A stretch of 64,000 bases of DNA from Macrostomum lignano (lineage: Eukaryota): positions 99,045 to 163,044 of the forward strand of contig NIVC01002544.1 of assembly GCA_002269645.1 (NCBI GenBank), given 5' to 3'. The notes beneath the pieces were generated by a model. The model ran no database searches and was not told the origin of the DNA. It was given only the letters and a program-made list of their open reading frames with translations. Made by a program: the position numbers and the translations under genes. Below, one piece after another: positions 116 to 62,124 of this stretch. How positions within the stretch are numbered: the stretch's first letter is position 1; each line of letters opens with the position of its first letter.

Positions 116-1708
116 ATGAAGCTCCAATTAGCAGGACTGATCTTCATTTTTATCTTGCAAGGATCGGCCGCTGACAATTCTGACACGAGTGAGTAACTGA
201 CTTTCTTGGTCTGACAATGAGTCATCGAAATCTCCTGATACGAGTACGAGCGTAGATACCGTGGTATCATTGCAGGCGAGTTCCCTATTCGAAGGAGCCG
301 CGTGCTGAGCACCTGGCAGTCGTCTTTTGGCGACGGCCAGACCTGCTTCTTCAACAGAAGCCAGACAGAGGAGGCCTCAGTTGTCAGTGACAAGCAGAAA
401 AGCTACCGGTTCTTTCACAGCAAAGGCAAGAGCCAAGCTGACGGCGGGTTTCACTGGTTCGCAGTGCAGCTGAATGAGCCAGTGCTGATCAGCTCTGTGA
501 CTGTGAAGGGCAGAGAGGGTGAGTCAGTCACTGTCTTTCATACTCGGCAATTTGCTGATACTCCTAAATTGGGAAAATTTCACTTCAGACGGAGTTCAAT
601 ACACCTACAACCGAGTGATCGACATTGAAATTTGGACATCGAGCTGGAGCAGGCGGGTGTTCTCCGGCGATGAGCACTGCACTTCAAGAAGCATGAGCGG
701 GCAGTTCAATGATTCACTGCCAAAATGGACACTTTGCGGTGTGATTAACAGCTCTCTGGAAAGCATCACTCGTGGTGAACTTCTCACTGTGTCCTGCGAG
801 AATGGGGTGGGTTCTGTCAATAATGCAGGCTAAATTGCTGCCAAACTGCAACTACAGTAGCTGAACTGCTTTCAGACATCCAAGCCAGCGCATCACCTGC
901 TGCTAAGGAAGGACGTGTCAAGCAAGGAACCGGACACAGATGACGATGATGTCATGAGCTTTGCGGATCTCAGACTGCAGGTTAGGCGACCTAAAAACCC
1001 GCCAGGTAAACTAATGACTGAAATTATTCTCTCTTGGTTTTAATATAAAATCTCTCAGTCATTCACAACAGTCTCAGTGATTTCCCAGTCATTCACAACA
1101 GTCTTAGTGATTTCTCAGTCATTCACAACAGTCTCAGTGACCTCTCATTCATTCACAACAGTCTCAGTGATTTCTCATTCACTCACAACAGTCTCAGTGA
1201 CCTCTCATTCACTCACAACAGTCTCAATGACCTCCCATTCATTCACAACAGTCTCAGTGACCTCCCATTCATTCACAACAGTCTCAGTGACCTCCCATTC
1301 ATTCACAACAGTCTTAGTGACCTCTCATTCACTCACACAACAGTCTCAGTGACCTCTCATTCACTCACAACAGTCTCAGTGATATCTCATTCATTCACAA
1401 CAGTCTTAGTGATTTCTCAGCCATTCACAACAGTCTCAGTGACCTCTCATTCATTCACAACAGTCTCGGTGACCTCCCATTCATTCACAACAGTCTTAGT
1501 GATATCTCATTCACTCACAACAGTCTCAGTGACCTCTCATTCATTCACAACAGTCTCAGTGACCTCTCATTCACTCTCTCTCGCACCTGCAGCCTCATCG
1601 CCGAACTCAGCCAGCAACGCAACCTTCTCAGCAACTGTGTCGGCCCTCGTATTTGTTTTAACCGCCCTAATCTGCGGCGTCGCTCTGGTCAGTAACTGGT
1701 CAATTTGA
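116..1708 (+). CDS. G1: signal peptide + one F-type-lectin-like domain + hydrophobic C-terminus (no Ig; TM or GPI signal)
   Basis: Exons 116-188 (MKLQLAGLIFIFILQGSAADNSDT), 276-518, 589-806, 876-1005, 1593-1708; GT-AG junctions with consistent phases; ends ASSPNSASNATFSATVSALVFVLTALICGVALVSNWSI*. Confidence 0.8.
1047..1575. repeat. 30-bp minisatellite in G1 intron 4 (~17 copies)
   Basis: Unit TCATTCACAACAGTCTCAGTGACCTCTCAT; lies between the donor at 1006 and the acceptor at 1592. Confidence 0.9.
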
Positions 1709-1949
1709 TTTTTTTTTGACAGGTAAGAGAATAACCGAATTTCGAATTCCAGCTGAAGCTGAAACTGAAGAGCAGACAGTTGCAGTCCTCAAGTCCCGAA
1801 GCAAAGCTGAGCAATGTGCCAGATAATCCGGCTGGCGTTGCTAAGGCAGTGCGCAAGGTGAGAGGCATCTGACCCCTGTACAGAATACTGCTGTGATGGC
1901 TCATGCAGGAGCAGGGAAGCTCAGTGGTACACGATTCCCCGCATTCATT

Positions 1950-2080
1950 TGGGCATTGTGCTCAAAAATAGGCCATTGGGTTTTCATGCATGCACAGACT
2001 GTACATGCCTGATGATTACAGTCAGGGCCGCTGTACACCCCGCGTGAGCGTGTGTGTGAGTGCCTGCTCCTGCGAATATT
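1950..2080 (+). mobile_element. SINE family B fragment (central domain)
   Basis: GTACATGCCTGATGATTACAGTCAGGGCCGCTGTACACCC, shared with 14300, 17440, 23140, 29440 and 49700. Confidence 0.55.
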
Positions 2081-2553
2081 GAAACTTCGAATGCTCAACA
2101 ACTGATGAGCAATGATGAATTGATGATGAAATCCGAGCCGGCTCCACCGATTTCAGACCGATTTCAAACTTACTGATTTCAGACGCTGCGACCGCGCGTC
2201 ACCGCCCGCAGCTGCGAGCCCGAGTGCAGCTACCTGTCGGTGAATCCCAACGCCGAGCCCGCCGACAACTCGGACAGGAATTCGGACACCGCAAGCGACT
2301 GCACCGTCTATTTGGAAATTGTGGCCGATGCCAACTAGCGAGCTGCTTCAATGATCATCAGATTCTTCACCTTGCATGCACTGCATCTGTGTACAGGGCA
2401 CCTGTTCTTGAGTGCGAGCTGAAATTTGTTTTAATGAACTCAAGCAATTGTTCAGTTTCAATGGTTAATACTCGTATTCAGCACAAATAAATCTTTGAAT
2501 TTCAAAATAAACGCTGACCTCTCGATGTCCATTGCCGAGCACCGTCGCTTCAA

Positions 2554-3620
2554 TCAGTCAGTCAGTCAGTCAGTCAGTCAGTCAGTCAGTCAGTCAGTCA
2601 GTCAGTCAGTCAGTCAGTCAGTCAGTCAGTCAGTCAGTCAGTCAGTCAGTCAGTCAGTCAGTCAGTCAGTCAGTCAGTCAGTCAGTCAGTCAGTCAGTCA
2701 GTCAGTCAGTCAGTCAGTCAGTCAGTCAGTCAGTCAGTCAGTCAGTCAGTCAGTCAGTCAGTCAGTCAGTCAGTCAGTCAGTCAGTCAGTCAGTCAGTCA
2801 GTCAGTCAGTCAGTCAGTCAGTCAGTCAGTCAGTCAGTCAGTCAGTCAGTCAGTCAGTCAGTCAGTCAGTCAGTCAGTCAGTCAGTCAGTCAGTCAGTCA
2901 GTCAGTCAGTCAGTCAGTCAGTCAGTCAGTCAGTCAGTCAGTCAGTCAGTCAGTCAGTCAGTCAGTCAGTCAGTCAGTCAGTCAGTCAGTCAGTCAGTCA
3001 GTCAGTCAGTCAGTCAGTCAGTCAGTCAGTCAGTCAGTCAGTCAGTCAGTCAGTCAGTCAGTCAGTCAGTCAGTCAGTCAGTCAGTCAGTCAGTCAGTCA
3101 GTCAGTCAGTCAGTCAGTCAGTCAGTCAGTCAGTCAGTCAGTCAGTCAGTCAGTCAGTCAGTCAGTCAGTCAGTCAGTCAGTCAGTCAGTCAGTCAGTCA
3201 GTCAGTCAGTCAGTCAGTCAGTCAGTCAGTCAGTCAGTCAGTCAGTCAGTCAGTCAGTCAGTCAGTCAGTCAGTCAGTCAGTCAGTCAGTCAGTCAGTCA
3301 GTCAGTCAGTCAGTCATAGTCACAGTCAGTCACAGTCACAGTCACAGTCAGTCACAGTCACAGTCACAGTCACAGTCACAGTCAGTCACAGTCACAGTCA
3401 CAGTCATAGTCACAGTCACAGTCATAATCACAGTCACAGTCATAGTCACAGTCACAGTCAGTCACAGTCACAGTCACAGTCAGTCACAGTCACAGTCAAT
3501 CAGTCACAGTCACAGTCACAGTCACAGTCACAGTCACAGTCACAGTCACAGTCACAGTCACAGTCACAGTCACAGTCACAGTCACAGTCAGTCACAGTCA
3601 CAGTCAGTCAGTCAGTCACC
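2554..3620. repeat. (TCAG)n perfect microsatellite (~760 bp) followed by (CACAGT)n
   Basis: Directly visible; the source of the SQSV ORFs. Confidence 0.97.
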
Positions 3621-3990
3621 CAGGTGCGAATTTTATTTATTGTGAATTGAATCAGCAAATGTTTAAATGCTGGCAACGCGGATAAACTTACTGAATATAA
3701 TTTCAGCATTTTAGTTATGAATATTAGTAGAAAACATCATTAATACCGAATTAAGTCAGAAATTAAAAATTGTCAAACAGCATCATTAGTTAAAATTGAA
3801 AGCTCCGACACTCTGAATAAACATAAAGGTGAACGCGCAACATTGCACAATGCCAACCTGTCCGCTCATTTTGCATCTTGATTAGAGCTGTAACAGTGGG
3901 GAGGGCAAAGTGTGAAATAAATTACAGCTGACAGATACACAGCCTGCAGAATACACAGCATATCATTGCCGGTGCCTTGGCAAAGTCGTC

Positions 3991-7022
<3,032 letters not shown>

Positions 7023-7406
7023 CTGCTGAGAGCTCTGCAAATTTAGCCTCATCTTCTCATAGTCTGTAAATAATGAACTGCTTCTTCCACGAGCTGCACA
7101 GTCTATTCGTAGCTATGAATGGGTGGCTTAAAAGGGCTTAAAATGATTTTTAGTGCCATTTTAACGCGCTCAGTAAAACAAAACACGAAAGCGAAACAAG
7201 CAGTCCAAACTGAAACATAGCCGCCTACTTTAACTTGAACTGTAGCAATGCAATTCGAAAAAGAGAGTAAATTTTTTACGATGTCAATTCGATATTTTAT
7301 TTATTCGATAGAATTAAAATATTGCTGGTAACGAAAAAATCGAATTACTACGTGTCAATGTCCACATTGACTTGATTATACATATCAATAATAATTATAG
7401 TAATAA

Positions 7407-7650
7407 TTAATTACACCTGCCCTAATTGGGCCAGATCATGAAGGCTGTGTACGGCTGTTCAGTGGGAGGTTGGGGTCGCCACACACCCTCAATTACCCCA
7501 GCTAATGCTGGCACCCATTTTACCAGCTGAGTGAACTGAAGCAATTCAGAGTTGAGTTCCTTGCTCAAGGACACAAATTGTTCCAGTGGGATCGGGAATC
7601 GAACCCCCGACTTTCAATTCGCGGGTCCGACGCTCCAACCGCTAGGCGAG
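7407..7650 (-). mobile_element. tRNA-derived SINE family A (CORE-like)
   Basis: Minus strand has an A-box/B-box head (TAGCGGTTGG...GGTTCGATTCC) followed by GTGTCCTTGAGCAAG; second copy at ~26000-26175. Confidence 0.65.
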
Positions 7651-8208
7651 TTTGCTATCCACCTAAAATTTCAGACATCAAAAAGAGATACTGAGAGTTC
7701 TGTGGAGGCAGTGGAACTGAAGCTGGTAGTCGCTGAGAGTTCCGGGATGCAACACAATGATGGTTCCGAAGCCGAGGTTTGTTAGTTTGGCTTTGACAGT
7801 TTAAACTTGTGCAGTGGCATGAAGTGAATGCATTATTGACAAACCGTCTCCTTTGTGGCAGGCGGGACCGAGGGTTCCTGACTCTGACTGCAGCTACCTG
7901 ACAGTCAGGCCACCGGCTGCTAAGCCGGCCACTGAGCACCCGGATGACAGGAGCGACTGCACTGAGTTCCTTAAAATTGTAGCTGATGGCGATTGACATG
8001 ATCAACTGCTCAAACTATAATCAATATTTTATTATTAGATAGAATTCAATATGTAAATTTAGCCATTGCCAGTTCATATTGTAAGAATTTCAGAGTTAAA
8101 GCAGTCGTATGCATGAGTGAATTACAGGAATTGAAGTATTTAAATGGCGCTGTAAATAAAATGCAAGAGAGTTTAAACTCCAAAGAAGCAACGGCTATTA
8201 ATGCGTCT

Positions 8209-8418
<210 letters not shown>

Positions 8419-8681: not shown

Positions 8682-11674
8682 ATGGAGGTCTGGTTCGCAA
8701 TGGCAGACCTGTTGCTGCTGCTGCTGCTGCTGCTGCTGGTCCAGACAGCCGCGCATGCTGAAGTTGGAGCAAACTGTGAGTTCTGCATGAGCAATGAATG
8801 TCAGCATGAATAAAAAGAATGTAAGTGCTCAATCTGTGCTCATTATTGCAGGCGAGTTCCCCATTCGCAGGAGCCGCGTGCTGAGCTCCTGGCAGTCGTC
8901 TTTTGGCGACGGCCAAACTTGCTTTTACAACAGAAGCCACACTGATGAGGAATCCGTGCTCAAAAACAAAACCTTTAGCTACCGGTTCTTCCACAGCGCT
9001 GGCCAGAGCTCAGCAGACGGCGGGTTTCACTGGTTTGCAGTGCAGCTGAATGAGCCAGTGCTCATCAGATCTGTGACTGTGAAGGGCAGAGAGGGTGAGT
9101 CACTCACTCAAATGCGTGCTCCAAGTCTGCTGTCTCTGCTCACGGTGCTCTCGCATTCCATATGGTGCATCGAAAGTCTTTAAAAGAGCCAGAGGCATTG
9201 TGATCTGGACATCAGACAGCAGCAGCCAGCTGTTCTCAGGAGATCACTGCAGTTCAAGGAGCATGAGCAGCCAGTTCAATGCATCACTGCATCTCTGGAG
9301 ACGGTGCGGGCTGACTGAGGGCGGCCCAAGAATTTCCGCTGGTGAAAATTTCACAGTGGATTGCATGGCTGAGGTGAATACATTTCAAATTTAAACTGCC
9401 TGTATATATTTACTAGCAAACTCTATAATGATGGATAATAAATAATCTTATTAAGTAGAATAAACAACCTGCTGCAGAGTTGTTAGAAAGTTGTTTTTCA
9501 ATAACAAATTCTCAGGTGAGGTACATTCTTCTTAGAAGAAGCATAACAAACGCGGACGTCTCGAGCTCTCTTGACTACATGAGTTTCGCTGACCTCCGGC
9601 TTCAAAAGTTGCAGCTGAGTAAGTCACGACTGTGGTGATTGCAGCTGCTCAAATGTCAGAAATATCGTACCTGAACTGCTGCTACCTGTGAACAATTTTA
9701 CGTTTTAGGGATCTCAGAAGCTCAACTCGTTGCGGAGAACTCCAGCTTCACAGTGAATTGCTCATTGGGCTGCACAGACCAGTCAGATGCTGGCTTAGCA
9801 GCTCTGATGCAGCTCTGCTTTCCGAACGGCAGCTGCAATGCATCACGGGAGCTGCGGGTTCCCAGAGCGCAGCCTCAACACGCTGGAAGCTACACCTGCA
9901 GACTGGGCTCTGTGGAGATGCGCACTGCAGTCTCTGTGCTGTGTGAGTGCAGACTTGGCATGGGCTGGCAAGCCTGTCTCTGTGCTGTGTGAGTGCAGAC
10001 TTGGCATAAGCTGGCAAGCCTGTCTCTGTGCTGTGTGAGTGCAGACTTGGCATGGGCTGGCAAGCCTGTCTCTGTGCTGTGTGAGTGCAGACTTGGCATG
10101 GGCTGGCAAGCCTGTCTCTGTGCTGTGTGAGTGCAGACTTGGCATGGGCTGGCAAGCATGTCTCTGTGCTGTGTGAGTGCAGACTTGGCATGGGCTGGCA
10201 AGCCTGTCTCTGTGCTGTGTGAGTGCAGACTTGGCATGGGCTGGCAAGCCTGTCTCTGTGCTGTGTGAGTGCAGACTTGGCATGGGCTGGCAAGCATGTC
10301 TCTGTGCTGTGTGAGTGCAGACTTGGCATAAGCTGGCAAGCATGTCTCTGTGCTGTGTGAGTGCAGACTTGGCATAAGCTGGCAAGCATGTCTCTGTGCT
10401 GTGTGAGTGCAGACTTGGCATAAGCTGGCAAGCCTGTCTCTGTGCTGTGAGTGCGTGACTGTGTGACTTGGGATGGGCTGTCAGGCATGTCACTTTCATT
10501 TTCTACTGACACATTTCTGTCAGATCCAAATCGATGCCTTTAATTTAATGATGGTGTCAAGTAATCCTGAGAAAAGCATATCTTGTCAATCTTTTATTCG
10601 TTATTGATAAATATGACGATTTTTATTTTGAATTCTAATTCGGTAACTTACTGACTTTTGCAGCAGTCTCCCCGCGTCAAGTTGTGATGAAGGGCTCCAA
10701 GCTCACTATGAGCTGCTCGCTGCACTGCAACGGCTCAGATCTGTGCTCAAACTCAAGCGGACTGCATCTCTGCTTGCTGAACGGCAGCTGCACAGGCAGT
10801 CACAGGATGGCCGTTGCTGTGGCGCAGCCTCTGCACTCTGGAAACTACACCTGCAGACTGGGCTCTGTGGAGTCTCGAACTTCGGTCACCGTGCTGTGTG
10901 AGCTCTTTAAATTCTCTTCAAAAGTTTCTTATTACAGACAGGATATCACAGGTGGCTCAACATGCACTCAGATTTAATATTTTTCAGACCCCCATCGAGA
11001 GTGTCAGTGTCAGTGCTGAATTTCAACAGCTGTCAGAACCTGTCAGATGTCATCGTGCAGTTTACATCAACAGAGTCTGAGCCAATCTCCGAGCACAGAT
11101 GCGGCGCAGAAGCTGCTGGAATTGAAATGCAGAATCTCACACTCATTCACCAGGTTGGTCTTAAATTCGTCAATCCAAAATTAACCTTTATTTGCTCAAT
11201 TGACTGTGACGGGTGCGGGCTTGCAGAGCTCTAGCGAGAACGGAACCATCAGCCAGTGGGTCCCGGACTCGAGCCTGCAAAGCGGCGGTGTCATCTCCAT
11301 AAAGTGCATCGCTCAGCAGCAGCTCCCGCAGCAGCTCGGCTTTCGGGTATTGAGTCAGGAGTCTGTGGAAGCCATCTGCACAGAACCGGAGATTTTGAGT
11401 TCCCTGTCCATTGCGATTGCCGCTGCCACAATTGGCGGTGCAGTCGCCCTGTCTGCTGTGTTGGTTGCGGTTGCGGCCGTGGTGAGAAACTGTTGGACAC
11501 TTCGACCTTTATTCTTCCCTTAACTGCATGATTCACTGCTCAATGCTATTCATGTTGCAGCGGATTTCCAGGCGGTCTCGTTCCAGAAGTTCGCCATCTG
11601 CCAGGCTGAAGATCTACTCAATTGTGCAGGTCAACTCCATGATGATCCCGTACGATGCGCAGCCGACAGATGCT
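8682..11674 (+). CDS. G3: SP + F-lectin-like + 2 Ig-like + MP + TM + tail; carries two lesions (possibly pseudogene)
   Basis: Exons 8682/8700-8775, 8852-9094, 9162-9373 (acceptor reads CAT, not CAG), 9516-9618, Ig 9709-9942, 10664-10897, MP 10988-11153 (C-run at 10989-10993 one base short), TM 11227-11481, tail 11561-11674 (RISRRSRSRSSPSARLKIYSIV...). Final exon not securely found. Confidence 0.7.
9930..10460. repeat. 46-bp tandem repeat (~11 copies) containing the Ig exon end and splice donor
   Basis: Unit GTCTCTGTGCTGT/GTGAGTGCAGACTTGGCATGGGCTGGCAAGCCT; period measured 9941 to 9987. Confidence 0.92.
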
Positions 11675-12004
11675 GTGAGTGCCATGCGTTTTATTTTCTT
11701 TTTAAGAAATATTTGCAACCAGTCATTTAAAAAACTATTGAACTCAAATTTTGAATTATTCCTGTTTGTGAGTTACACGAACTGTTACACAGTGTGAACA
11801 AAATTTTTATGGATATTTTTTGTTTTACATAAAAATTCTGCTAAATTTCTATCTCTACTTTCAGTAACTGATACCTTATATCTAAAATGAGTTCCGAAAG
11901 ATATAAACAAGTAACCGGACTTCATTGGGGGCAGAGAAGCTCAGCAGTAAACGCTGTTGGATCTATGAAGCTTGAACTTTTGTTGTTTGATTTGATTTTG
12001 ATTT

Positions 12005-13410
12005 TCAAGTTGGAACTGCTCTCGTCGGCATTCCGAGTGTCATTAGTCAAGTTGGAACTGCTCTCGTCGGCATTCCGAGTGTCAATAATCAAGTTGGAAC
12101 TGCTCTCGTCGGCATTCCGAGTGTCATTAATCAAGTTGGAACTGCTCTCGTCGGCATTCCGAGTGTCATTAGTCAAGTTGGAACTGCTCTCGTCGGCATT
12201 CCGAGTGTCATTAATCAAGTTGGAACTGCTCTCGTCGGCATTCCGAGTGTCATTAGTCAAGTTGGAACTGCTCTCGTCGGCATTCCGAGTGTCATTAGTC
12301 AAGTTGGAACTGCTCTCGTCGGCATTCCGAGTGTCATTAATCAAGTTGGAACTGCTCTCGTCGGCATTCCGAGTGTCAATAATCAAGTTGGAACTGCTCT
12401 CGTCGGCATTCCGAGTGTCATTAGTCAAGTTGGAACTGCTCTCGTCGGCATTCCGAGTGTCATTAGTCAAGTTGGAACTGCTCTCGTCGGCATTCCGAGT
12501 GTCATTAGTCAAGTTGGAACTGCTCTCGTCGGCATTACGAGTGTCATTAGTCAAGTTGGAACTGCTCTCGTCGGCATTCCGAGTGTCATTAGTCAAGTTG
12601 GAACTGCTCTCGTCGGCATTCCGAGTGTCATTAGTCAAGTTGGAACTGCTCTCGTCGGCATTCCGAGTGTCATTAGTCAAGTTGGAACTGCTCTCGTCGG
12701 CATTCCGAGTGTCATTAGTCAAGTTGGAACTGCTCTCGTCGGCATTCCGAGTGTCAATAATCAAGTTGGAACTGCTCTCGTCGGCATTCCGAGTGTCATT
12801 AGTCAAGTTGGAACTGCTCTCGTCGGCATTCCGAGTGTCATTAGTCAAGTAGGAACTGCTCTCGTCGGCATTCCGAGTGTCATTAGTCAAGTTGGAACTG
12901 CTCTCGTCGGCATTCCGAGTGTCATTAGTCAAGTTGGAACTGCTCTCGTCGGCATTCCGAGTGTCATTAGTCAAGTTGGAACTGCTCTCGTCGGCATTCC
13001 GAGTGTCATTAGTCAAGTTGGAACTGCTCTCGTCGGCATTCCGAGTGTCATTAGTCAAGTTGGAACTGCTCTCGTCGGCATTCCGAGTGTCATTAGTCAA
13101 GTTGGAACTGCTCTCGTCGGCATTCCGAGTGTCATTAGTCAAGTTGGAACTGCTCTCGTCGGCATTACGAGTGTCATTAGTCAAGTTGGAACTGCTCTCG
13201 TCGGCATTCCGAGTGTCATTAGTCAAGTTGGAACTGCTCTCGTCGGCATTCCGAGTGTCATTAGTCAAGTTGGAACTGCTCTCGTCGGCATTCCGAGTGT
13301 CATTAGTCAAGTTGGAACTGCTCTCGTTGGCATTCCGAGTGTCATTAGTCAAGTTGGAACTGCTCTCGTCGGCATTCCGAGTGTCAATAGTCAAGTTGGA
13401 ACTGGCCTCG
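12005..13410. repeat. 42-bp minisatellite (~33 copies)
   Basis: Unit CAAGTTGGAACTGCTCTCGTCGGCATTCCGAGTGTCATTAGT. Confidence 0.95.
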
Positions 13411-14214
13411 TGGGCATTCCAGGCGTCACGTCCGGTAGTAGATTAGTCCAGTTGTTGACTGGGCCACCCGCAGCTTGGGCTAGCCCCACCCCCAGCTTTG
13501 ATGACACTTGCTGCGTTGGATATGGTCATCATGCGCACTTCATGAACTTCCGATCTGTTCCACAGCTTCAACTGCAGCGCCAGCGTACTCCCATGAGTGC
13601 AGCACTGCCTGTACTCAAGCACTCCTGGGCGGAGTTTGACTCCCCTCAACTCAACTCAAGAGGATGATGATGCTCAGGTTTCTCAGGCGCGGTTGAATCA
13701 CCGTTCATAGCATATTTGACAAAGTCGTCATGAGTGAGAAGGAAGCCAGCGTTCTTCGTATCACGGCTTAGGACTTGAACGAATTGAAGCGCGGTCAGTG
13801 TTTGCTGTCGTACGCGTGACTTTGATTTAGCGGGTTGTCTTTGTTACAGCATCCGAGTACGCGAACATGCCAAATCGGTTCTGCACAATGTCCACGGCGA
13901 AGTTTGCTACTCCGTCCAAAAATAGCACCTCCGTTCTTGATGAGGCCAGTCACATAGAGTCAATAGTGTGTTTGGAGTCGACATTGGTTATGCCGATGAC
14001 TTCGATCCGACAATGTCCACTGTCCAGAGTTCGTCCGAATCTCTCAGTTCCTTTTCAACTTTTTAATTTCTCATTGCTCTCTACGCTCGGGTTTGCTTGT
14101 ACAGCAAGTATACCTAAGGCAAAAAATAATCAAACAACAAAAGTTCATGCTCGGCAGATTCAACAAACGCGTCCGACCCTCGCGACACGACCCCTTGCTT
14201 GGTGCGCGGCTGCA

Positions 14215-14560
14215 TTCATTTAGGGCTTGTGCTCAAAATTGGCCAGGGGCTCAGGCTCGATTCACAGCCATGAGGGCCAACCCCCCCCCCCGGCACAGAG
14301 AGTGTACATGCCTGACGATTAGAAAGTCAGGCCGCTGTACACCCTGTGTGAGCGTGTGAGGGCGTGCCTGCATACAGTATTAAAGTAGGTGCTCATTAGT
14401 CAGTGGAATGGGCAGAATTGCCTTAACGCTGGTTGTGGGACGGTGGGTGTTTCTACCCGGACCTACACAAGCACCGCACTGAAACATTTGCAGGCCTGCT
14501 GTTGCACGGAGGAGCTGCCAGAGTGCAGCTACTTAACAATAATCCCACCTGGAGGTCAGG
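14215..14560 (+). mobile_element. SINE family B copy
   Basis: CCCCCCGGCACAGAGAGTGTACATGCCTGACGATTAGAAAGTCAGGCCGCTGTACACCC...AACAATAAT tail. Confidence 0.6.
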
Positions 14561-15049
14561 CAGAGGCCACCACAGCCGATTTGCAGCACTCTGCCAGCGA
14601 ATGCACCGAGTTTATTGAGATTCTGGCTGATGGAGAGATTGAAGACTCATAAGTTCGGTGTGTACTCAAAAGCTCACAGTTGAAGGATTTAAGTGACGAA
14701 TCACCAAAATACCTGATGGTCCTCCACACCTGCCTTCTTGCTTCTAATTAATTTAACATATACGAAAAACAATATGATATCAGCAAAACGTGAATATCAT
14801 TGACTTTTTGTTAATGTTACTTTGAACTTATAGATTTTAATCAAACTTTTTCAATCAAGTTTCGCTAAACATGTGCGCCAATAAAGCATTAATTTTCTGC
14901 TTTTAACTCAGAAGTGGCTTTAAATGGACAGTTTAGCCCTGGACACATGGCTTGATTTCTTGCAGGATGTTTACTTAGAACTGATGATTGGGCTGTTTTG
15001 AGGGGCCTGTTCCTGGAAATAGATCGGAAGCTTATCGGAAAGTGACACA

Positions 15050-47709: not shown

Positions 47710-48719
<1,010 letters not shown>

Positions 48720-49061: not shown

Positions 49062-49102
<41 letters not shown>

Positions 49103-49870: not shown

Positions 49871-52639
49871 CCCCCCCCTAAATCAAGCTAGTTACCTTAC
49901 AGTTTATTTCCAGCTTCCGGTAAAAGGAACTGGCCCACGGCAGTGTCTATGCGCGATGGCTTGCGACTGCTTGGGGGAACTTCGCACAGGACGAACTTTT
50001 GCACAAAAACAGCCGCGGCTGACAATTCTGGACCCGCACAACTTGGCTGAGAGGCTTGGATTAAGAATTACAGCCTCGTCATCGACACCTATGAAGCTGA
50101 CTCTGCTGCTACTGCTGCTGCTGGCATTGCTCTGCGCACGAGCGACTGACACGTGTGAGTTGAGTGCCGGCTTGTTGTAATCGCAGACAGAGAGCACTGC
50201 TCATCCCCATTGCTCCAACTTGCAGGCGAGTTCCCAATTCGTTGGAGCCGCGTGCTGAGCACCTGGCAGTCGTCCTTTGGAATCATCTTTGGAGAACCCA
50301 CGTGTTTCTACCAACGAAGCAGGTCGCGTGAGGATTCCTTACTAAACAATATAAGATACAAATTCTTCCACAGCAAAGGGCAGGGCGAGGCGGACGGCGG
50401 GTTTCACTGGTTCGCAGTGCAGCTGAATGAGCCAGTGCTCATCAGATCTGTGACTGTGAAGGGCAGAGGCGGTGAGTCACTCACTCAAATGCGGGCTCCA
50501 AGCCAGCTGTCTCTGCTCACGGTGCTCTCACATTCCAGATAAAGCATCGCATGTCTTTGAAAGAGCCAGAAGCATTGAGATCTGGACATCAGACAGCAGC
50601 AGTCAGCTGTTCTCAGGAGATCACTGCAGATCAAGGAACATGAGCAGCCAGTTCAGAGAGTCCCAGCAGCACTGGAGACTGTGTGGGGTCACGGAGAGCA
50701 ACAATTCACAGATCGCGGCTGGGGAGATCTTCACAGTGAACTGCGTTGCAGAGGTGAGTTTTGGAGCGAAATCTGGTAACCATCGCAACCGATTTCGCAA
50801 CACCAACGCAACCACTTCAGGTGCGGCAGTTGCTTCTGCGAAGAAACGTTACAGCTGCTTCAACTGACCACGGCTTCATGAGCTTTGCGGACCTGCGGCT
50901 TCAAACGCTCCCGCTGAGTAAAAGCAGCTGTTCTCAAATGTTTGCTTCTTTGATTACGCGAAAAAAACAGTTATTGAGCCCTCTAATTTTGTCTGAGATG
51001 GGATACTCCCCTTTGCCTGAAGTACTCAAACAAGAAGATTCTAGCATGTTCCCTTTTACCATTTAGCCTGTACAGTTGTAAGTTTTTCAACCGAGACTGC
51101 TAGGGTAGATTTATCAGTGCTTGATTGATCCAAACATCTCGCTTTCAGACATTTCAAGCCCTCAACTGGTGGCAGAGCAGTCCAGCTTTGAAGTTCGCTG
51201 CTCTCTGCAATGCGATGGAGCTGATCACCTGAGTACACACTCAGCCAAGTTGCAGCTGTGCTCACCAAACGGCAGCTGCACCGTCAGGAACCAGCTGAAG
51301 GTCGACAGAGCTCAGCCATCGCACTCTGGAGTTTACACCTGCAGAATTGGCTCGATAAATCAATCGTCTTCAATCACAATCCTATGTGAGAGCCTGATGT
51401 AGTTTGAGTTTGCTCTTATTAGTTCCTTAAATATTAACCTGCCTGTCACAGTTAAAATGTTCCTGTAAATTAAATATAGACAGCTTTTAATACGGAGACC
51501 TTGATCATGCCATTTCGTATCGCATTCCAGCGTCATCACCAAACCAAGTGGTTGCTGAGAACTCCAGCCTCACGCTGAACTGCACTCTGCACTGCGGAGG
51601 CGGCGATGCAGCTCAGTGCGCAGACTCCGCTGCTGTCGGACAGCTGCTGCTGTGTCGCCCCAACAAGACCTGCACAGCACAGACGAGTCTGCAGATCCCA
51701 GCGGCAACTGCAGCACAATCGGGAGACTACAACTGCAGCATTGGACAGGTGGTTGCTGTCACAAGTGTGGCTGTTCTCTGTGAGTAGCAGCTTTGCACCT
51801 GAGTGGTCAGTCACTGTCTGCATGTACATCGCTGACAAATGAAGTCATTCCTGTTTGTTATTTTACAGCTGCAACGCCGCATCAAGTGGTCCCTGAGGGC
51901 TCCAGTCTCAGCCTGGGCTGCGTACTGCATCATGCGGGCTCAGCTGATTTCCGCCAGCCTCAGCTGTGCTACCCGAACGGCAGCTGCTCAGCTGAGAGCT
52001 CGATAAGCGTTGCCAGTGCCAGGCCATCGAACTCCGGTCTCTACAGGTGTCGGCTCGGCTCACTGGAAATACCGTCACTTGTTGCTGTGCTGTGTAAGTT
52101 GCTCAGATCATCTTACACTTTCTTGCACTCTCAGTTTCTGAACAAGAACTGATCAGTTTCTCTGTGGATCAGTAAGTGATCAGTCTCCAGATTCATTCTT
52201 GTACAAAAGTAAGAGTTTCTCTACTGACAAGTGTAGCATGCTTAAGCAGGCAGTTCGGGCACCTATAGTTTGCACTCCGTGACCCCCACCCAGCCTATCC
52301 ACTTCCCTCTGCTCGAGCACATCCCAACGCGCACTCAATGAACTGGTAATCTGTGTTCTACCAGACAACACTCGTTAATATACAGACACAGCCACATTCT
52401 ATTTCTCCACCGTTTTGAGTGGCTAACTATGCACTCGCAACAACCAGCTAGAGTTGCTCGCTACAACAAGTAGAAAGCAATGAGTGTGGCGATTTATTCC
52501 TGCATGCAAGGCAAAAAATGTGACCAAGTAAGAGAGCAGAGTTCTGGTAGGAGTTCCGACTTGAGCTTGGATGAAGACGTATGAGTATGAACATGATCAG
52601 AAAAATCCATCTCAGGGTCGATATTCTACTCGTACTTTT

Positions 52640-52740
52640 AAGCAGCTGTGCACTCCAAGTGGGGACTGCCGACACAATCAGCAGATCCACATTGCTCATG
52701 TGAAACATCTGTCAAAATTACTTCAAGTCGCTGTTCTGAG
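52640..52740 (+). pseudogene. Deleted remnant of the Ig exon paralogous to G4 18360-18593
   Basis: CAGCTGTGCACTCCAAGTGGGGACTGCCGACAC...GTCGCTGTTCTGA/GTGAGTC is retained; the acceptor, 5' half and an internal segment are missing. Confidence 0.75.
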
Positions 52741-53162
52741 TGAGTCATTGATTAGCTTAAAATGCTTTCACTAAAGATGGCAAGGATGCATTCGATAGGA
52801 CACGGAGATTTTTTCCACCAAGAACTTCCATTTCAATAGAATAGAAATAGGCTCAGTTTGAATAAATTTATGTATCTGAAATTTATTAAATTCCCAGCTT
52901 CATCTCCGAGCCAGAAAGTTTCCGAAAACGCAAGCTTCACCGTGAGCTGCTCTCTGCACTGCGGAAATGCATCGCAATGCTCAGACCGTCCACTGGGTGG
53001 CGACCTCCGGCTGTGCCCTCCGAATGGGAGCTGCCTGACAAATTCAAGTGGACAGAGCTCAGGCAATGCACTCCGGAGTTTATACTTGCAGATATGACGT
53101 CATTGAGATTGAGACAGAAGTCTTTGTTCTTTGTGAGTAGAAAGTAGGCTGCCTTCAGAATC

Positions 53163-53910
53163 TTGTTGCTCAGTGTTGCTCAATGTTGCTCAGTGTTGCT
53201 CAGTGTTGCTCAATGTTGCTCAGTGTTGCTCAATGTTGCTCAATGTTGCTCAGTGTTGCTCAGTGTTGCTCAATGTTGCTCAATGTTGCTCAATGTTGCT
53301 CAGTGTTGCTCAGTGTTGCTCAATGTTGCTCAGTGTTGCTCAGTGTTGCTCAGTGTTGCTCAATGTTGCTCAGTGTTGCTCAATGTTGCTCAGTGTTGCT
53401 CAGTGTTGCTCAGTGTTGCTCAATGTTGCTCAGTGTTGCTCAATGTTGCTCAGTGTTGCTCAGTGTTGCTCAGTGTTGCTCAATGTTGCTCAATGTTGCT
53501 CAGTGTTGCTCAGTGTTGCTCAATGTTGCTCAATGTTGCTCAGTGTTGCTTAGTGTTGCTCAGTGTTTCTCAATGTTGCTCAATGTTGCTCAATGTTGCT
53601 CAATGTTGCTCAATGTTGCTCAATGTTGCTCAATGTTGCTCAGTGTTGCTCAATGTTTCTCTGTGTTGCTCAGTGTTGCTCAGTGTTGCTCAGTTTTGCT
53701 CAGTGTTGCTCAGTGTTGCTCAGTGTTGCTCAATGTTGCTCAGTGTTGCTCAGTGTTGCTCAGTGTTTCTCAATGTTGCTCAATGTTGCTTAATGTTGCT
53801 CAATGTTGCTCAGTGTTGCTCAGTGTTGCTCAGTGTTGCTCAGTGTTGCTCAATGTTGCTCAATGTTGCTCAGTGTTGCTCAGTGTTGCTCAATGTTGCT
53901 CAATGTTGCT
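53163..53910. repeat. 10-bp minisatellite, paralog of 19032-19800
   Basis: Directly visible. Confidence 0.95.
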
Positions 53911-56465
53911 CAATTGCACAATCGATTAACTCACCTTCATCAGGTGAGTTCCCAGTTCGGCGAAGTCGCATTCTGAGTTCGTGGCAGTCATCATTCGACG
54001 ATGGTCCGACGTGTTTCCACAGCAGGAATCAGGCAGACGAAGCCTCCATCATCAGCAACAGGCAAACCAGCTACAAGTTCTTCCACAGCGCCAACAGAAG
54101 CCAAGCAGACGGCGGGTTTCACTGGTTCGCCGTGCAGCTGAATGAGCCAGTGATCATCAGATCTGTGACTTTGAAGGGCAGAGAGGGTGAGTGAAAGACA
54201 ACTTACTTCTTCTTTCTGCCTTAGGCTTCTGTAAAGACTGAGTCTCCTGCTCTGAAGATTCCACCGTACAGTAATATGTTTCAGTAAGATCAAAAGTAAC
54301 TCCTCATCTTATTTTCAGACGGTGTGATATATAATTATAATCGAGCAAAGGACATTGAAATATTTACCTCCAACTCTAGCAGCTCCCTGATCCATGGGGA
54401 TAACTGCAACATCAGGAATATGGGCCTTCAGTTTAAAAATTCGATGCACCTTTGGAGGCCATGCGGCGTAACTAAAAAGCAGGGAGACGTCGCAGATGGA
54501 GAAATGTTTCACGTGAAATGCGTTGCTGAGGTAAAAATATTTCAAATATCTGCAGTGATTTGAGTCTTATGGTCTCTTAAAGCAACCTGAAATGATGAGC
54601 ATTTAAACTGCAGGTCCGAAGTCTACTCCTGCGAAGAAACGTGTCTAAAGACACGGACGGGCACATGAGCTTTGCTGACCTGAGGCTTCAGACTGGGAAA
54701 ATCAGTAAGATTTTTGAGCTGTCATGAGTTGTGTCCAAGTCCTGGTGTGTGTGCTAAGTTGAAGCGCTAGCAGTACATGCAAAATGACTGAAGTTCGTCT
54801 CAAAAGTGTCTCAAATCATTGCATTTCAGAAGTCGAGAGCCCCAAGGCGGTGCTGCAGCACTCAGCATTCTCAGTGCGCTGCCTTTTGGACTGCAACGGT
54901 CGAACCGAATTCTCACCGAAGTTGGAGCTCTGCCTTCCAAACGGAAGCTGCGTTGGACAAGCTGAAGCCGTCATTCACAGGGCGCAGCTGTGGCACCATG
55001 GAAACTACACGTGCAAGCTGGGCAGCTCGCGGAGCTCAAAGTTCTTAACGGTGTTTTGTAAGTTGATTCCGGCCTCTGGATGACAGTCGATTGATTAGCA
55101 TTTGGTTACAGCAGCGTTGCACTGGGACTCCTCTCGTACACAGATTGGGACAAAATTCTCAGTGTATGCTCACAAGGAGTGCAAGCTTAAGGCTGACTGG
55201 TGGCAGTAGGAGCAGCCTTCAACGGCAGCAGATCAGACTGCATTTCAGGTCACCTTTCTATTAGCCTTTTATCCTTACAGGGTATGTCAACTAAGTCCGG
55301 AAAGGGAAACGGATTGTCAAAGGGGTGGTTTCTCTCTCGGACGCCATTATTGGATCCACCAACCAGTGTAGAACGATCGATGGAGATGTGTACATATTCA
55401 AAATATTCACATAGACTTTTGCACTCAAATGATGTGGAGTAACTTCTATTCATCTTCGGTACGGTATTCAATACGTATCGATCCACGGCCTAAATAGGTT
55501 TGAAAAAATCATGAAAACCATCAGATAACTGAAAAGCTTATTGATCGAACTTGATGAACTCCATTCCCCTTTTTAATATGCTCACAGACCCGCCATCAAG
55601 CGCATCAATTTCTGTACTCAATCTGCCAACCTGCGAGAACTCATCCGACGTATTGGTACAGTTCGCATCGTCTGCATCTCTACCAGTGCCCGAGCACAGA
55701 TGCAGCGCTGTTGGTGGCGGATTGGAAGTGCGAAACCTCACGCAGCTGTCATTTGTGAGTCGCTTGCATTTTGCACTTTCACACTATGAGTGACTACGCG
55801 CTGACATGCTGACCAGCGAGCTTCATCAATTCCAGAGCTCGTGCGGAGACGGTTGGGTCAGCACGTGGGCACTGGCGATCGGGGGGAAGCTGAGCTCAGA
55901 GTGGCTTGTGGGCCTCGTCGAGTGCAGCGCAGTGCAGAATCTGCCGCCGGAGATCCGGTTCAAGGCGAGCACAGGGCCTCAGCTTGCTACAGCTGCGGCA
56001 GTCACAATGGTCTCATCAAACCTGATGTGCAGTCCTTACACATGTACATTTCACAGTTCTTGTACGGATTTCTAACAGCAACTGCTCTGCTAAGTGTGCT
56101 CTTGCTTGTCTTGGGCTCGGTGAGTAACCCCTCTCTCTAAATTATATTTTCCGTCTCTGTGCTCTAAGCTGCCGTGTTGCATCTGCTAACTTCAGTTTTC
56201 AGTCATCAAATTCAGAGTAACAAAGTCGTGGACAAAACAAACTATTCCAATGGTAAGCTTTGATTTTCTCAATCTGTACAGTCGACTCAAACTGTGACAG
56301 CTAAAGTTCGAACTCTTTGCGCTTTAGTCTGATCGATCCACGACGCCTGGATCTGGAGCACCGGTTGCTGCCGCTTCTGCTTCCATGGAGTATGAGAACT
56401 CTGGTTACAACCTGGAGGATGCTACTGGTGTCTACGTGACCTGAGGGTTTTCAAGCTGGCAAAGT

Positions 56466-58790: not shown

Positions 58791-59905
58791 AGAAAAAGCG
58801 CCAGCGTGTCAACCTAAAGTAGTAATAATCTGCAGTACATGTACAAAGACAAGTAAACTGAGACAGTGTACCATTAAATTCGCATCTGGATTTTTGCACT
58901 TCCGAATTCCAAATAGAGTCTGTCAGGCGAAATTTCAGCTGTTCCTGTCTGTTTGAAATTATTGAGTTATAGTTTAATAAAAGTTTCATCATTAAGCAAC
59001 GATGCATTGCATAAATGCAAAAGAAAACTCTATTTCAGTAATTCCTATACTGGAGTTAAATTGGAGGAGTAAGTGGGCGCAGGGCCCAAACGATATTTAA
59101 TGGTATTTATACCAGACATTAACTTTGGGGGTTGAGCCCAGAATAATAAGGAGAGGGGGGCGGAGGGAGACTGGAGAGCCAATCAGAAGGCGGCGAGGGA
59201 GACAGAGATAAGAATAACAAGATTGAGCTAGACAGAGGGCCTTTTCATATTGCTTGTTCTGGTTCCAGAACCAGAACCAATTTGTGAAGTATAACTTTTT
59301 GTCTCCATAACTAGAGGGAGATACGTGCTATAAAGTTTTTATTATTGAATGACAATCGCCAAGAAGAAAGTGAAAAATTGTGCTAAGTGAGGTTGTTAAG
59401 GCAGTCAAACATTCAACAGAGTTAAATAGTTATACTGCTGTTTTTCTTGAAGATCCGAACCGATTCTGATTCTGGAATTGGTAATATGAAAAGCCTCAGA
59501 GAGAGAGGTGAACTAAGAAATGACTAGGAAAGTCGCGACACCTGCAGAGTCAGAGACGGCCAAGCAAACTCAGTCCCCATCGGAGCCAAGAAACCCAAAT
59601 ATGATTTTCGTCGCTTATTCAAACCAAGTTCAGTTTGGCCAAGGACTTCTATTATCTAGAAGTCCTTGGTTTGGCTAAGCTGCAGCCAGAGAGTTTGTAA
59701 ACATTTTATTTCAACTTGCAGTCTTATACACAGATGGAACTTGTAGTCACCACCTGCCGGAACAGAACTTGCGACTGCAGCCCTGCATCAATGGTTTCTG
59801 CAGCCAAATACAAAAGCCATGACACAAGATCAAAATGGATTCTTTTTTGCTGCGCTTGTTGTACTAAACGACAGAATTGCTTTGAAGTGATCAGCAAGTG
59901 TCTGC

Positions 59906-62124
59906 ATGATGGAAGCTGCAGCGCTGATATCCCTGTTAGGGCTCTGCTCTGCATCGCTACCTGTCTCTGCGACTGTGAGTGAAAGCTTTTTAAACCCTCC
60001 AGGGTGTTTTTTCAAGCGAAATGGATTTCTAACTTCTCAAGTTCCTATGTTGCAGGTGGGGTGCCGATTCGCAACAAGACTGTACTCAACGCCTGGCAGT
60101 CCTCTTATTTCTATTCTTGCTTTCACGAGAGAGACCAGCTGAATGAGAGCAATGTTCTGAACACAAGCCAAAGTTTTCAGTTCATTCACAGCAATGACAA
60201 AAAGCATTTTAACGATAGCGGATTTCACTGGTTCGCTGTGCAGCTGAGTGAGTCAGTGCTCATCGGTTCTGTGACAGTGAAGGGCAGCGAGGGTGAGTTA
60301 CACCACAGACCAGTTTTATGAAGCACTGATTGACTAGTTGGTTAACTTACTTGACATAGCTTCAGGGAGTCCGGGCATCCGGATGCAGCGAGGCGTCGCC
60401 GCCCATTTTGCGAACCCCTGGCGACCAGGGAAGCTGGTGCTGCGGTGTTCTGCAGGGAGATCCGGTGGTGCCAGTGTCCGCAGCGCGGTAGCCTTAGGTA
60501 GCGGACGAGCTGGCAGAGATTCTCGGGCCTGAAAACGTCGGAGAGGTCCGAGTTTGGGCTGAGGTAGGTGAAGCCTGTCCTGAGTAAAGGCGGAGCATTC
60601 ACAGATGAAGTGCTCCGCATTCTCGACACCGGAGAGGCAGAAAGGGCATCATTCCTCGCTACGGATTTTTCCTGAAGGTAACGATGCCTGGCAAAACAGC
60701 CATGACCCGAGAGGTCCATGGTCACGGCCCTGATGTCCCTGCGGTTGAGTCCAAGCAGGACTCTTGGCTAGTTGGTTGATTTCATAAAAAACAGCAGCTG
60801 CTTTTTATTGACTGTCTAAGCTGGATGCTGTAATTTAACCCTAAAGTCATCGGTTCGCTTATGAAACTAAATCACTGCAGCATTCCTGAAACCCTCTTTC
60901 TTCCGGTATTTTTTACAATCTCGTTGATCTGGCAATAATTTCAGTCTTCTCGGATGCTGAAATGTTCCGCAGCTCAGCTGGCATCGAGATCTGGACTTCG
61001 AACTCAGAGGAGCAACTGTTTTCTGGCAATCACTGCAACTCAAAAAATATGAGCAAACAGTTTAATAAGTACCTGAGCAGTTGGAAGCGTTGCGGTGTCA
61101 CTACAAATAGGTCGATGAGTAGCACACGTAATGGGCTCTACATGGTGGACTGTCTTGCAGAGGTGAGCATTGATGCTACAGAGATTATGTGCTTAATTAG
61201 TTCATCTCACCCGGATCTCAAAATGTTGAGTGCAACATCCAGGTCCGGTATCTGCTCCTCAGGAGAAACGTGAGCCTGAGCTTCTCAGCCAGAGACTACG
61301 GCTATCTGAGCGTCTCAGATCTGACGCTGCAGACAGTGCGCCTGGGTGAGGCTGTGGACTTTCCCAAAGCACTTGAAGACCAGAGAAGCCTCAAAAGTGG
61401 CATGAAAATATCTGATAATATTGTGGGCTTTGGCCTGACTTTCTAGTCATCAGGCTTGTGCACTCTCTGTGCATTGGGGGCTGGCCTTCATGGTCATGAA
61501 TGACACGAGAACTGCCACGGTAAATAGCATTATAGCATTAAAGTATAAATTTATATGACTTGATTTGCAGTACCATCGACAGACCAACTTGTTGCTGCAA
61601 ACGAAAGCTTTAACGTGAGCTGCTCGTGCATTCTATGCAACGGCACGGAGTTGAGCACGAACTCAAGGCAGCTGCAGCTGTGCCAACCAGACGGAAACTG
61701 CACGAAACCTGGAAGCTGTCGTTGTGAAGGCACAGTCGCAGCACTCTGGCCTCTACACCTGCCAGCTTGGCTCTGCCGCAGAGTCAACTTCCGTCACAGT
61801 GCTGTGTGAGCTGAGTGTCATTGCTTGTCTCCATATTTAAATACAATTAATAGACAAAAAGCAACCATAACGTGTTGCATTTTCAGCATCCTCGCATGCG
61901 CAAACAGCAGCCGAGAACGACAGTTTTGCAGTGAGCTGCACGCTGTACTTCAATGGTTCGGAGATCATTGGAACAACACAAGCGGCATGCAGCTGTGCCA
62001 ACCAGATGGGGAACTGCAGTGGCGGGCCGGGAGCTGCGGATCAACAGGGCGCTGCGGCAGCACTCCGGCAGCTACACCTGCCAGGTGAACTCCACTCGAG
62101 TTTCAACCTTCGTTACCGTGCTGT
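59906..62124 (+). pseudogene. G8: SP-L-Ig-Ig..., several frameshifts, no TM seen in window
   Basis: Exons 59906-59974 (needs +1 G at 59939-59941 to give MMEAAALISLLGALLCIATCLCD), 60056-60292, 60945-61162, 61243-61345, Ig 61571-61805 and 61887-62124, both frameshifted. Confidence 0.72.
60344..60767 (-). mobile_element. 5'-truncated LINE with 10-bp target-site duplication
   Basis: TSD CTAGTTGGTT at 60334-60343 and 60768-60777; LNRRDIRAVTMDLSGHGCFARH is homologous to the 48320-48390 element; GTAA-type tail. Confidence 0.75.

Follow-up and report, generated by a model that had tools for sequence, protein, structure and literature searches.

A tandem cluster of genes for modular lectin-type and immunoglobulin-domain membrane proteins in the flatworm Macrostomum lignano

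Organization of the gene cluster

The last 64,000 bases of contig NIVC01002544.1 (163,044 bp; assembly Mlig_3_7, GCA_002269645.1) of the flatworm Macrostomum lignano, hereafter the window, contain eight neighboring genes, all on the + strand, that are built from the same modules: a signal peptide (SP), a lectin-type domain (L) encoded by three exons (LA, LB and LC), single-exon immunoglobulin (Ig) domains, a membrane-proximal domain (MP), a transmembrane (TM) helix and a cytoplasmic tail. The products of the intact genes are modular type I membrane glycoproteins, which carry a lectin-type domain at the tip, Ig domains as a stalk, and tyrosine motifs that are conserved between the tails. Searching the window with module peptides (tblastn; E-values of 1e-10 to 1e-54 for module exons) located 12 L domains and 27 Ig domains on the + strand, with 24 of the Ig exons intact and three frameshifted. 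Their order is L; L-Ig3; L-Ig2; L-Ig3-L-Ig-L-Ig4; L-Ig-L-Ig5; L-Ig; L-Ig3-(Ig)-L-Ig; L-Ig2, exactly as a first-pass annotation of the sequence had listed for eight same-strand paralogs, so that single genes carry one to three L domains and zero to eight Ig domains. Because the window stops at the contig end, the cluster could extend past it. Transfer RNA and Rfam scans of the window gave no matches.

An SP exon with a phase-1 donor is found ahead of all eight leading L domains in the window, whereas the four internal L domains lack one, which indicates eight genes. The SP exons lie at the following positions:

116-188, + strand: SP exon of gene 1
3991-4054, + strand: SP exon of gene 2
8700-8775, + strand: SP exon of gene 3
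15950-16019, + strand: SP exon of gene 4
30188-30245, + strand: SP exon of gene 5
43725-43788, + strand: SP exon of gene 6
50091-50154, + strand: SP exon of gene 7
59906-59978, + strand: SP exon of gene 8

All exons are bounded by AG and GT, with a GC donor at 31995 (gene 5) as the sole exception, and their phases are constant (LA from 1 to 1, LB from 1 to 0, LC from 0 to 1, Ig from 1 to 1). The spliced models of genes 2-6 are open from the ATG to a single stop and encode 616, 560, 1403, 1034 and 483 amino acids, respectively. A 4.2-kb frame that stays open across 20 exons is strong evidence that each multi-L architecture belongs to one gene under selection. We considered whether the internal L domains might instead start separate genes and rejected this possibility: SP, TM and tail exons are missing from the stretches between them, two of the introns measure just 88 and 244 nt, and the frames of 1403 and 1034 amino acids are intact. 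The splice sites, fixed phases and open frames of genes 2-6 likewise bear out the SP, three-exon L and one-exon Ig modules of the first-pass annotation. The genes are arranged as follows, all on the + strand:

116-2338, +: gene 1, SP-L-TM-tail without Ig; matches a 339-amino-acid GenBank protein
Gene 1 exons, +: SP 116-188; L 276-518, 589-806, 876-1005; TM/tail ~1592-1693, 1753-1860, 2183-2338
3991-7996, +: gene 2, SP-L-Ig3-MP-TM-tail; 616 amino acids, open model with canonical splice sites
Gene 2 exons 1-5, +: 3991-4054, 4185-4427, 4511-4710, 4780-4867, 4953-5186
Gene 2 exons 6-10, +: 5265-5495, 5574-5807, 5893-6059, 6750-7004, 7862-7996
8700-14652, +: gene 3, SP-L-Ig2-MP-TM-tail; 560 amino acids, open model
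Gene 3 exons, +: SP 8700-8775; L 8852-9094, 9177-9373, 9516-9618; Ig 9709-9942, 10664-10897; MP1 10972-11153; MP2/TM 11227-11481; last exon 14494-14652
15950-28057, +: gene 4, SP-L-Ig3-L-Ig-L-Ig4-MP-TM-tail; 1403 amino acids, 20 exons
Gene 4 L domain starts, +: 16631, 19833, 21187
Gene 4 Ig exons, +: 17777-18013, 18360-18593, 18759-19001, 20715-20942, 22753-22992, 23554-23787, 23897-24145, 26442-26678
Gene 4 3' end, +: MP/TM 26764-27227; last exon 27908-28057
30188-42622, +: gene 5, SP-L-Ig-L-Ig5-MP-TM-tail; 1034 amino acids, 16 exons, open frame
Gene 5 features, +: L domain starts 30311, 31467; MP1 33888-34054; MP2/TM 42004-42267; last exon 42506-42622
43725-46846, +: gene 6, SP-L-Ig-MP-TM-tail of type B; 483 amino acids, open model
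50091-56444, +: gene 7, SP-L-Ig3-[broken Ig]-L-Ig-MP-TM-tail of type B
59906-62124, +: gene 8, SP-L-Ig2; L intact at 60056-60292, 60945-61162, 61243-61345

Six genes (1-6) look intact and two (7 and 8) carry lesions. Gene 1 agrees with the transcript-derived GenBank annotation: its SP and LA exons are 100% identical to BOX15_Mlig012084g1 (P0004) and its tail exons 92-98%. Gene 2 is probably Mlig012084.g2, forming one transcriptional unit with gene 1. Gene 4 is one 4212-nt reading frame with a stop only at its end. The intron between MP1 and MP2/TM in gene 5 (34055-42003) measures 8 kb, is low in GC (38-40%) and consists mostly of 23-, 46- and 69-bp tandem repeats (35490-36856, 38092-41375). 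The exons of gene 6 are 95-100% identical to UniProt models P0001 and P0003, and a UniProt model also backs its last-exon acceptor at 46691. Directly upstream of that exon, at 46279-46689, lies a 37-bp tandem repeat (11 copies) that is open in its frame.

In gene 7, the bracketed Ig exon (52898-53132) has an 8-bp deletion between short direct repeats, and a second frameshift in the MP2/TM exon near 55960-55980 fits a 1-nt indel. Gene 7 is likely to be a pseudogene; the alternative is that splicing skips the damaged Ig exon and that the MP2/TM frameshift reflects an error of the assembly. In gene 8, frameshifts affect the two Ig exons (61571-61805 and ~61907-62124), and no MP/TM exon was found downstream up to the contig end (64000). 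The lesions of genes 7 and 8 are corrections to the first-pass annotation. MP, TM and tail modules are all present in genes 2-7, and gene 1 has no MP unit.

Ig, MP and tail modules

The Ig exons match the Ig fold as proposed: Pfam Ig_2 is matched with 43.9 and 38 bits, above its cut-off of 27, and gene 2 matches it at E=2.8e-11. All 24 intact Ig exons keep the B-strand Cys (V.C) and the F-strand YxC, measure 225-249 nt and run from phase 1 to phase 1; an additional "LC.PNG.C" pair is also present. The MP unit comprises two exons in the genes that carry it, fused into one in gene 4. Pfam returned no matches for MP, and its model was a seven-strand all-beta fold of low confidence (predicted local distance difference test [pLDDT] 64), whose only neighbors were Ig-like sandwiches, none of them significant. 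The predicted fold suggests that MP is probably Ig-like.

A TM helix is present in genes 1-7; in genes 2-7 it is a hydrophobic helix at the end of the MP2 exon, and in gene 1 it occupies a separate exon. The cytoplasmic tails span 40-90 amino acids, with last exons of two types, and their motifs are kept among paralogs that have otherwise diverged. Genes 1-5 share [E/D]CSY[LMY]x[V/I], a conserved YxxPhi motif, followed in genes 1-4 by CTx[Y/F]x[E/K]I[V/L]xDG some 11-24 residues later. A true TxYxxI, the type of the immunoreceptor tyrosine-based switch motif (ITSM), occurs in genes 1 and 4 only; in gene 1 the tail ends with ECSYLSV, 22 amino acids, TVYLEIVADAN and the stop. The tail end of gene 5 is shorter and divergent (GYREMVADGD), its second motif being degenerate. 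Type B tails (genes 6 and 7 and UniProt model P0002) end in [E/D]YENSxYxLExAxG[IV]Y; that of gene 6 ends in EYENSEYKLENATGIYIL before the stop.

Fold and relationships of the L domain

The L domain is about 180 amino acids long. An AlphaFold model from 11 of the 12 paralogs (alignment row 6 left out; pLDDT 75, predicted template-modeling score [pTM] 0.77) returned 70 PDB matches at E<=1e-3 in Foldseek, and the best 50 of these are all beta-sandwich or jelly-roll modules of the general galactose-binding-like fold. The listed matches are mostly carbohydrate-binding or discoidin/F-lectin-type domains: among them are carbohydrate-binding module (CBM) family 32, the N-domain of galactose oxidase, the CBMs of EndoS2 and sialidases, and the F-lectins 3cqo, 1k12, 2j22 and 4gwi, together with SUN domains (SUN2) and modules of XRCC1-N, UBR4 and BIRC6. 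TM-scores of ~0.4-0.55 do not favor the F-lectins, as CBM32, the galactose oxidase N-domain and SUN score equally well or better (TMq 0.42-0.54 against F-lectins and other jelly rolls).

Sequence comparisons place L in the same neighborhood. HMMER searches of all PDB chains, with a single sequence and with a profile, gave no matches even at E<=10. In Pfam, 10 of the 12 L domains match both F5_F8_type_C and F5_F8_type_C_2 below threshold: the best E-value is 5.2e-5 for PF00754 (F5/8 type C; first member 20.5 bits, gathering cut-off 28.2) and 2.2e-4 for PF22633, the profile of the F-type lectins (first member 14.6 bits, cut-off 27.8). Aligning the L profile with five solved F-lectin sequences taken from the PDB (hhalign) gave a probability of 69-73% and a score of 35, compared with 11.4 for the reversed alignment and 11.3 +/- 2.0 (maximum 17.6) for 60 column shuffles. 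A bacterial protein with Pfam-recognized F5/8C domains aligned at least as well as the F-lectins (probability 85%, score 40.6).

Known F-type lectins carry a fucose-binding motif, HX24RXDX4(R/K), and a calcium-binding motif, h2DGx (PMC5712786). In L, the pattern is instead H-x31-R in 11 of 12 domains, R-x-D in six, and a further basic residue beyond a variable loop of 8-15 residues. Five of the 12 domains contain FGDGP/Q (with variants FDDGP in two and FGNGP in one); its flanks deviate from h (V/A/I) and x (N/D/S), it lies ~27 rather than ~15 residues before the His, and hhalign leaves it unaligned. On the motif test and the bacterial F5/8C-type control, we rejected a strict F-type lectin identity. 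L does resemble the F-type lectins AAA (1K12), MsaFBP32 (3CQO) and oyster bindin in its same-superfamily jelly roll (~140-180 amino acids), in a core aligned by hhalign ("...WW/WF-x-V-x-L...SVT-x-x-x-R-x-D...R-x-x-x-[IE]-[IV]" plus a C-terminal strand), in a His and two Arg at comparable places, and in a varying number of repeats per polypeptide; however, it shares neither their fucose-motif spacing nor their profile threshold. Our conclusion from the predicted model and the profile alignments is that L is a divergent new family in the galactose-binding-domain-like superfamily, near the discoidin/F-lectin group. The first-pass name "F-type lectin" is thus valid at the superfamily level only. 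A keyword look-up of the review cited above (PMC5712786) returned no combination of an F-lectin with an Ig domain.

Discoidin/F5/8C receptors (DDR, neuropilin, Caspr) are comparable in that they provide the best sub-threshold Pfam match, are membrane receptors and share the superfold. In contrast to the flatworm proteins, they pair the domain with a kinase, CUB/MAM or laminin G and are conserved across animals.

Three residues of L are near-invariant: His47 (FFHS), Arg79 (KGRE) and Arg87 (3-4 residues before IEIW), with hhalign placing Arg79 and Arg87 on AAA Arg79 and Arg86. Variation within the domain peaks in the loop between these two Arg (8-15 residues; proportion of nonsynonymous differences [pN] 0.62). 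Since the fold fits and these residues lie beside a hypervariable loop, carbohydrate binding by L is plausible. Alternatively, L could bind a protein, as do DDR discoidin, neuropilin b1 and SUN-KASH, and the family could serve cell-cell adhesion or tissue organization, with the Ig array adhering in epidermis, gut, nerve or adhesive organs. The protein-binding SUN2, XRCC1-N and UBR4 among the structural neighbors would suit adhesion, whereas the conserved basic triad and most fold neighbors point to sugars.

Evolution of the cluster

Pairs of L paralogs have ratios of nonsynonymous to synonymous substitutions (dN/dS) of 0.22-0.43, with dS mostly 0.7-1.4, and the median identity among Ig exons is 42%. 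Such figures point to a long-established family that is kept under purifying selection and turns over by birth and death, rather than to a hypervariable one. The first-pass description of the receptors as "variable", in the sense of rapid diversification, is not borne out by dN/dS of 0.2-0.4 among old paralogs. Positive selection on the whole of L was rejected on the same ratios, and no 8-codon window exceeded 0.8; a recent burst of expansion was likewise rejected on the Ig identity and dS values, save for one 2.4-kb block.

This block, [Ig - minisatellite intron - L - Ig], is shared by gene 4 (18565-20949) and gene 7 (52711-55064) at 92% identity in a blastn search of the window against itself. 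The fifth and eleventh L domains (L5 and L11), which lie in it, differ by a dS of 0.036, and the paired Ig exons are 97% identical. The symmetrical exon phases mean that L blocks and Ig exons can be duplicated, moved or lost with the frame kept, and the block common to genes 4 and 7 shows architecture changing through block transfer of phase-symmetric exons. The locus is thus a clean example of architecture evolving by phase-symmetric exon shuffling, with one transfer caught. The intron of the block contains a minisatellite with a 10-bp unit, TGTTGCTCAG, in ~75 copies (19033-19801 before L5; 53164-53912 before L11), which translates to a long spurious "LLSVAQCCS" ORF (open reading frame) that runs in frame into the LA exon.

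An ~82-nt tract at the 3' end of LA, ending exactly at the donor, is near-identical in nucleotides in all 12 L copies, synonymous sites included. The proportion of synonymous differences (pS) within it is 0.19-0.22, as against ~0.7 elsewhere in L, and a 39-mer from the tract occurs 11 times at <=3 mismatches, on the + strand only. Gene conversion may have produced it; alternatively, it may act at the RNA level, for instance as a splicing enhancer or a small-RNA target. Examples are:

437-518, +: ~82-nt tract
4346-4427, +: ~82-nt tract
9013-9094, +: ~82-nt tract
50390-50471, +: ~82-nt tract

Such a tract could also figure in a diversified immune or self/non-self system of lectin-tipped receptors of the immunoglobulin superfamily (IgSF) that arose in the flatworm lineage. 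In it, paired inhibitory-type (TxYxxI) and other tails would set signaling, shuffling of exon blocks and possibly skipping of phase-symmetric exons would generate receptor variety, and the ~82-nt tract would be the homology anchor at which L modules convert or recombine. If true, the cluster would parallel Siglec- or KIR-like clusters by convergence, in an animal group from which variable IgSF immune receptors are not known. We regard such a system as rather unlikely.

Distribution and transcription

A search of 1.84 billion representative proteins with the L profile gave 22 matches at E<=1e-3, of which 20 are from M. lignano and the others are one metagenome contig protein and one weak bacterial match. 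Of ten weaker matches looked up, eight come from M. lignano and are listed as "hypothetical" or under automatic names, and the remaining two are the bacterial match and the metagenome protein; a search at the level of the nr database returned M. lignano proteins only. The metagenome contig (JGI 3300040801, Ga0450804_0569779; 1598 bp; L004) encodes L(part)-L-Ig-MP1 in the Macrostomum module order, with LA and LB fused and short gaps between modules, and the module order is thus present in at least one organism outside the M. lignano assemblies. Within M. lignano, more remote family members (L-MP-TM, L-Ig-TM, L-L) sit at other loci; two such dispersed members (L002 and L003) have no family copies within +/-10 kb and lack the ~82-nt tract.

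Mlig012084.g1 and.g2 both belong to orthogroup OG0000001 (Brand et al. 2020, PMC7336406), whose 158 transcripts come from M. lignano (at least 32 gene models), M. spirale and M. hystrix; M. pusillum is not represented. Its positional classes are mixed (non-specific, other, tail and testes), it carries no neoblast or germline tag and no response to social environment, adults of two species express it more strongly than hatchlings do, and its mean protein divergence is 1.30 (PMC7336406). Per-gene expression of Mlig012084 and other family identifiers was not found in the published supplements or full text searched.

The family is real, unnamed and lineage-restricted, so far almost only in the genus Macrostomum. 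Databases name its proteins "hypothetical" or by automatic labels, and our literature searches found no paper naming or studying it and no described flatworm receptor family pairing lectin-type and Ig domains, in agreement with the first-pass annotation, which recognized no named family with this architecture.

A pessimistic reading would be that the array is largely dead, gene 1 excepted, and consists of unexpressed relics of an old expansion. The frameshifts in genes 7 and 8, the inverted LA fragment upstream (see below), the introns full of tandem repeats, and the presence of gene 1 alone in the GenBank annotation of the inspected stretch are what such an array would leave. However, genes 2-6 retain intact frames of 483-1403 amino acids over 8-20 exons with dN/dS of 0.2-0.4, and the same transcript-based orthogroup contains Mlig012084.g2 together with at least 30 other gene models of M. 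lignano. The missing models have another explanation: the GenBank annotation of M. lignano excluded transcripts overlapping repeats, the window is rich in tandem repeats, and this exclusion is plausibly why genes 2 and 3 are unannotated while gene 1 is annotated. We consider a largely dead array very improbable.

Possible functions

These modular type I membrane proteins are probably ligand-recognition receptors. The L domain at the tip would bind the ligand, most likely a carbohydrate, the Ig domains would form a stalk of variable length, and the tails would couple binding to endocytosis or phosphotyrosine signaling. Their likeliest role would be the recognition of non-self or environmental glycans. 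An immune or microbe-sensing function is the most attractive reading, and adhesion and reproductive recognition are serious rivals.

Several observations weigh against a glycan-sensing immune receptor. The splice junctions of genes 2-8 are predicted from sequence, and the GenBank annotation, where inspected, lacks these genes. L falls below every Pfam gathering threshold, the fucose motif HX24RXDX4(R/K) occurs in none of the 12 L domains, and many jelly rolls of its superfamily bind proteins or lipids, SUN, XRCC1 and UBR4 being among the matches. In the tails, the first motif has Cys at -2 and is hence no canonical immunoreceptor tyrosine-based inhibitory motif (ITIM), and the second has Phe for Tyr in genes 2 and 3. 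Apart from the one block duplication, nothing points to positive selection or recent expansion, and the "Testes" and "Tail" tags of OG0000001 fit a non-immune role equally well.

Adhesion gains from the purifying selection and old paralogs, which resemble those of housekeeping cell-adhesion molecules, and from the mixed orthogroup tags, which include "Tail", the site of the adhesive organs. Yet core adhesion systems are usually conserved, whereas this family is confined to one genus or its close relatives, and the architectures of neighboring genes differ strongly, with two genes decaying. We view adhesion as an unlikely function, if one to be taken seriously.

The L repeats, varying from one to three, also call to mind reproductive recognition proteins of sperm, egg or mating partner, since oyster sperm bindin consists of a variable number of F-lectin repeats. 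The high between-species protein divergence of the orthogroup (1.30), some "Testes" tags and higher expression in adults than in hatchlings in two species would suit such proteins, and Macrostomum reproduction-related genes are fast-evolving (PMC7336406). Set against these, the orthogroup has no germline tag from fluorescence-activated cell sorting and no social-environment response, it falls in a mixed positional class instead of a testis or ovary one, and paralog dN/dS is well below 1; moreover, the proteins are membrane-anchored with signaling-type tails, not secreted acrosomal ones. A reproductive role appears distinctly unlikely.

The family is best filed as a variant of the known lectin-plus-IgSF receptor theme. 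The Siglec-like character proposed in the first-pass annotation is an analogy drawn from domain order and tail tyrosine motifs. Like Siglecs and other vertebrate ITIM/ITSM IgSF receptors, the proteins are type I, with a glycan-binding-type tip and variable Ig spacers on phase-1 exons, and Siglecs too form a gene cluster with pseudogenes and have two tail tyrosine motifs ~20-25 residues apart. However, the Siglec tip is an N-terminal V-set Ig domain with a sialic-acid-binding Arg, whereas the flatworm N-terminal domain is a galactose-binding-like jelly roll; Siglecs have a canonical ITIM where the flatworm proteins have a proximal CxYxx[V/I], and the flatworm distal Tyr is Phe in genes 2 and 3, TxYxxI being limited to genes 1 and 4. 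By these comparisons, the resemblance would be convergent at most, a fair functional analogy and not membership.

Snail FREPs, CREPs and GREPs and amphioxus VCBPs are likewise lineage-restricted invertebrate multigene families that fuse IgSF with a carbohydrate-recognition-type domain. They are secreted proteins with N-terminal Ig domains and a fibrinogen, C-type lectin, galectin or chitin-binding domain. The flatworm proteins differ in that the lectin-type domain is N-terminal and repeatable, the proteins are anchored in the membrane, and neither somatic nor unusual germline diversification is seen; the reversed domain order, the TM helix of genes 1-7 and the different lectin-type fold set them apart from the snail families. 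Hydractinia Alr is a tandem, lineage-restricted cluster of type I IgSF genes with variable domain numbers, pseudogenes and tail tyrosine motifs; the flatworm cluster is similar in these traits, but Alr proteins lack a lectin-type jelly roll.

The cluster is a gene-level candidate for receptors with a lectin tip, Ig stalk and tyrosine tail arising independently outside vertebrates, molluscs and chordates. M. lignano is the one flatworm with routine transgenesis and RNA interference, which makes the question of independent origin directly testable. Were the proteins adhesive or reproductive, they would still constitute a large, genus-restricted, fast-diverging surface-protein family under misleading automatic names.

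Neighboring elements

An inverted, frameshifted LA fragment lies ~7.7 kb upstream of the window (L001 2086-2261, - strand; 67-78% amino acid identity), and neither LB, LC nor Ig exons accompany it. This relic of a ninth copy forms the left boundary of the cluster, with a protein kinase gene as its neighbor farther upstream. A 23-bp array related to the repeats of the gene 5 intron is also found upstream of the window (L001 5371-7211).

Other elements lie within or between the genes:

24805-25416, - strand: ORF of 203 amino acids whose start resembles a signal peptide and whose Cys pattern is weakly PAN/apple-like (Pfam PAN_3, E=0.027), antisense in the 2.3-kb intron of gene 4 between the seventh and eighth Ig exons
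48041-48713, + strand: fragments of a retrotransposon without long terminal repeats (non-LTR), between genes 6 and 7, with an RNase H tail and a zf-RVT-like ORF
60342-60725, - strand: ORF in the long LA-LB intron of gene 8 that resembles a retrotransposon ORF by eye, with no Pfam matches

The antisense ORF at 24805-25416, for which no identical database protein was found, may represent a gene nested within gene 4, or the first exon of such a gene.

Finally, genes 1 and 2 (116-7996) stand under one transcriptional-unit name (Mlig012084.g1 and.g2), and an older gene model, A0A1I8JLC6 (P0008), joins the last exon of gene 1 straight to the LA exon of gene 2. The two genes may thus be read through or co-transcribed like an operon and then resolved by trans-splicing, a process described for M. 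lignano.

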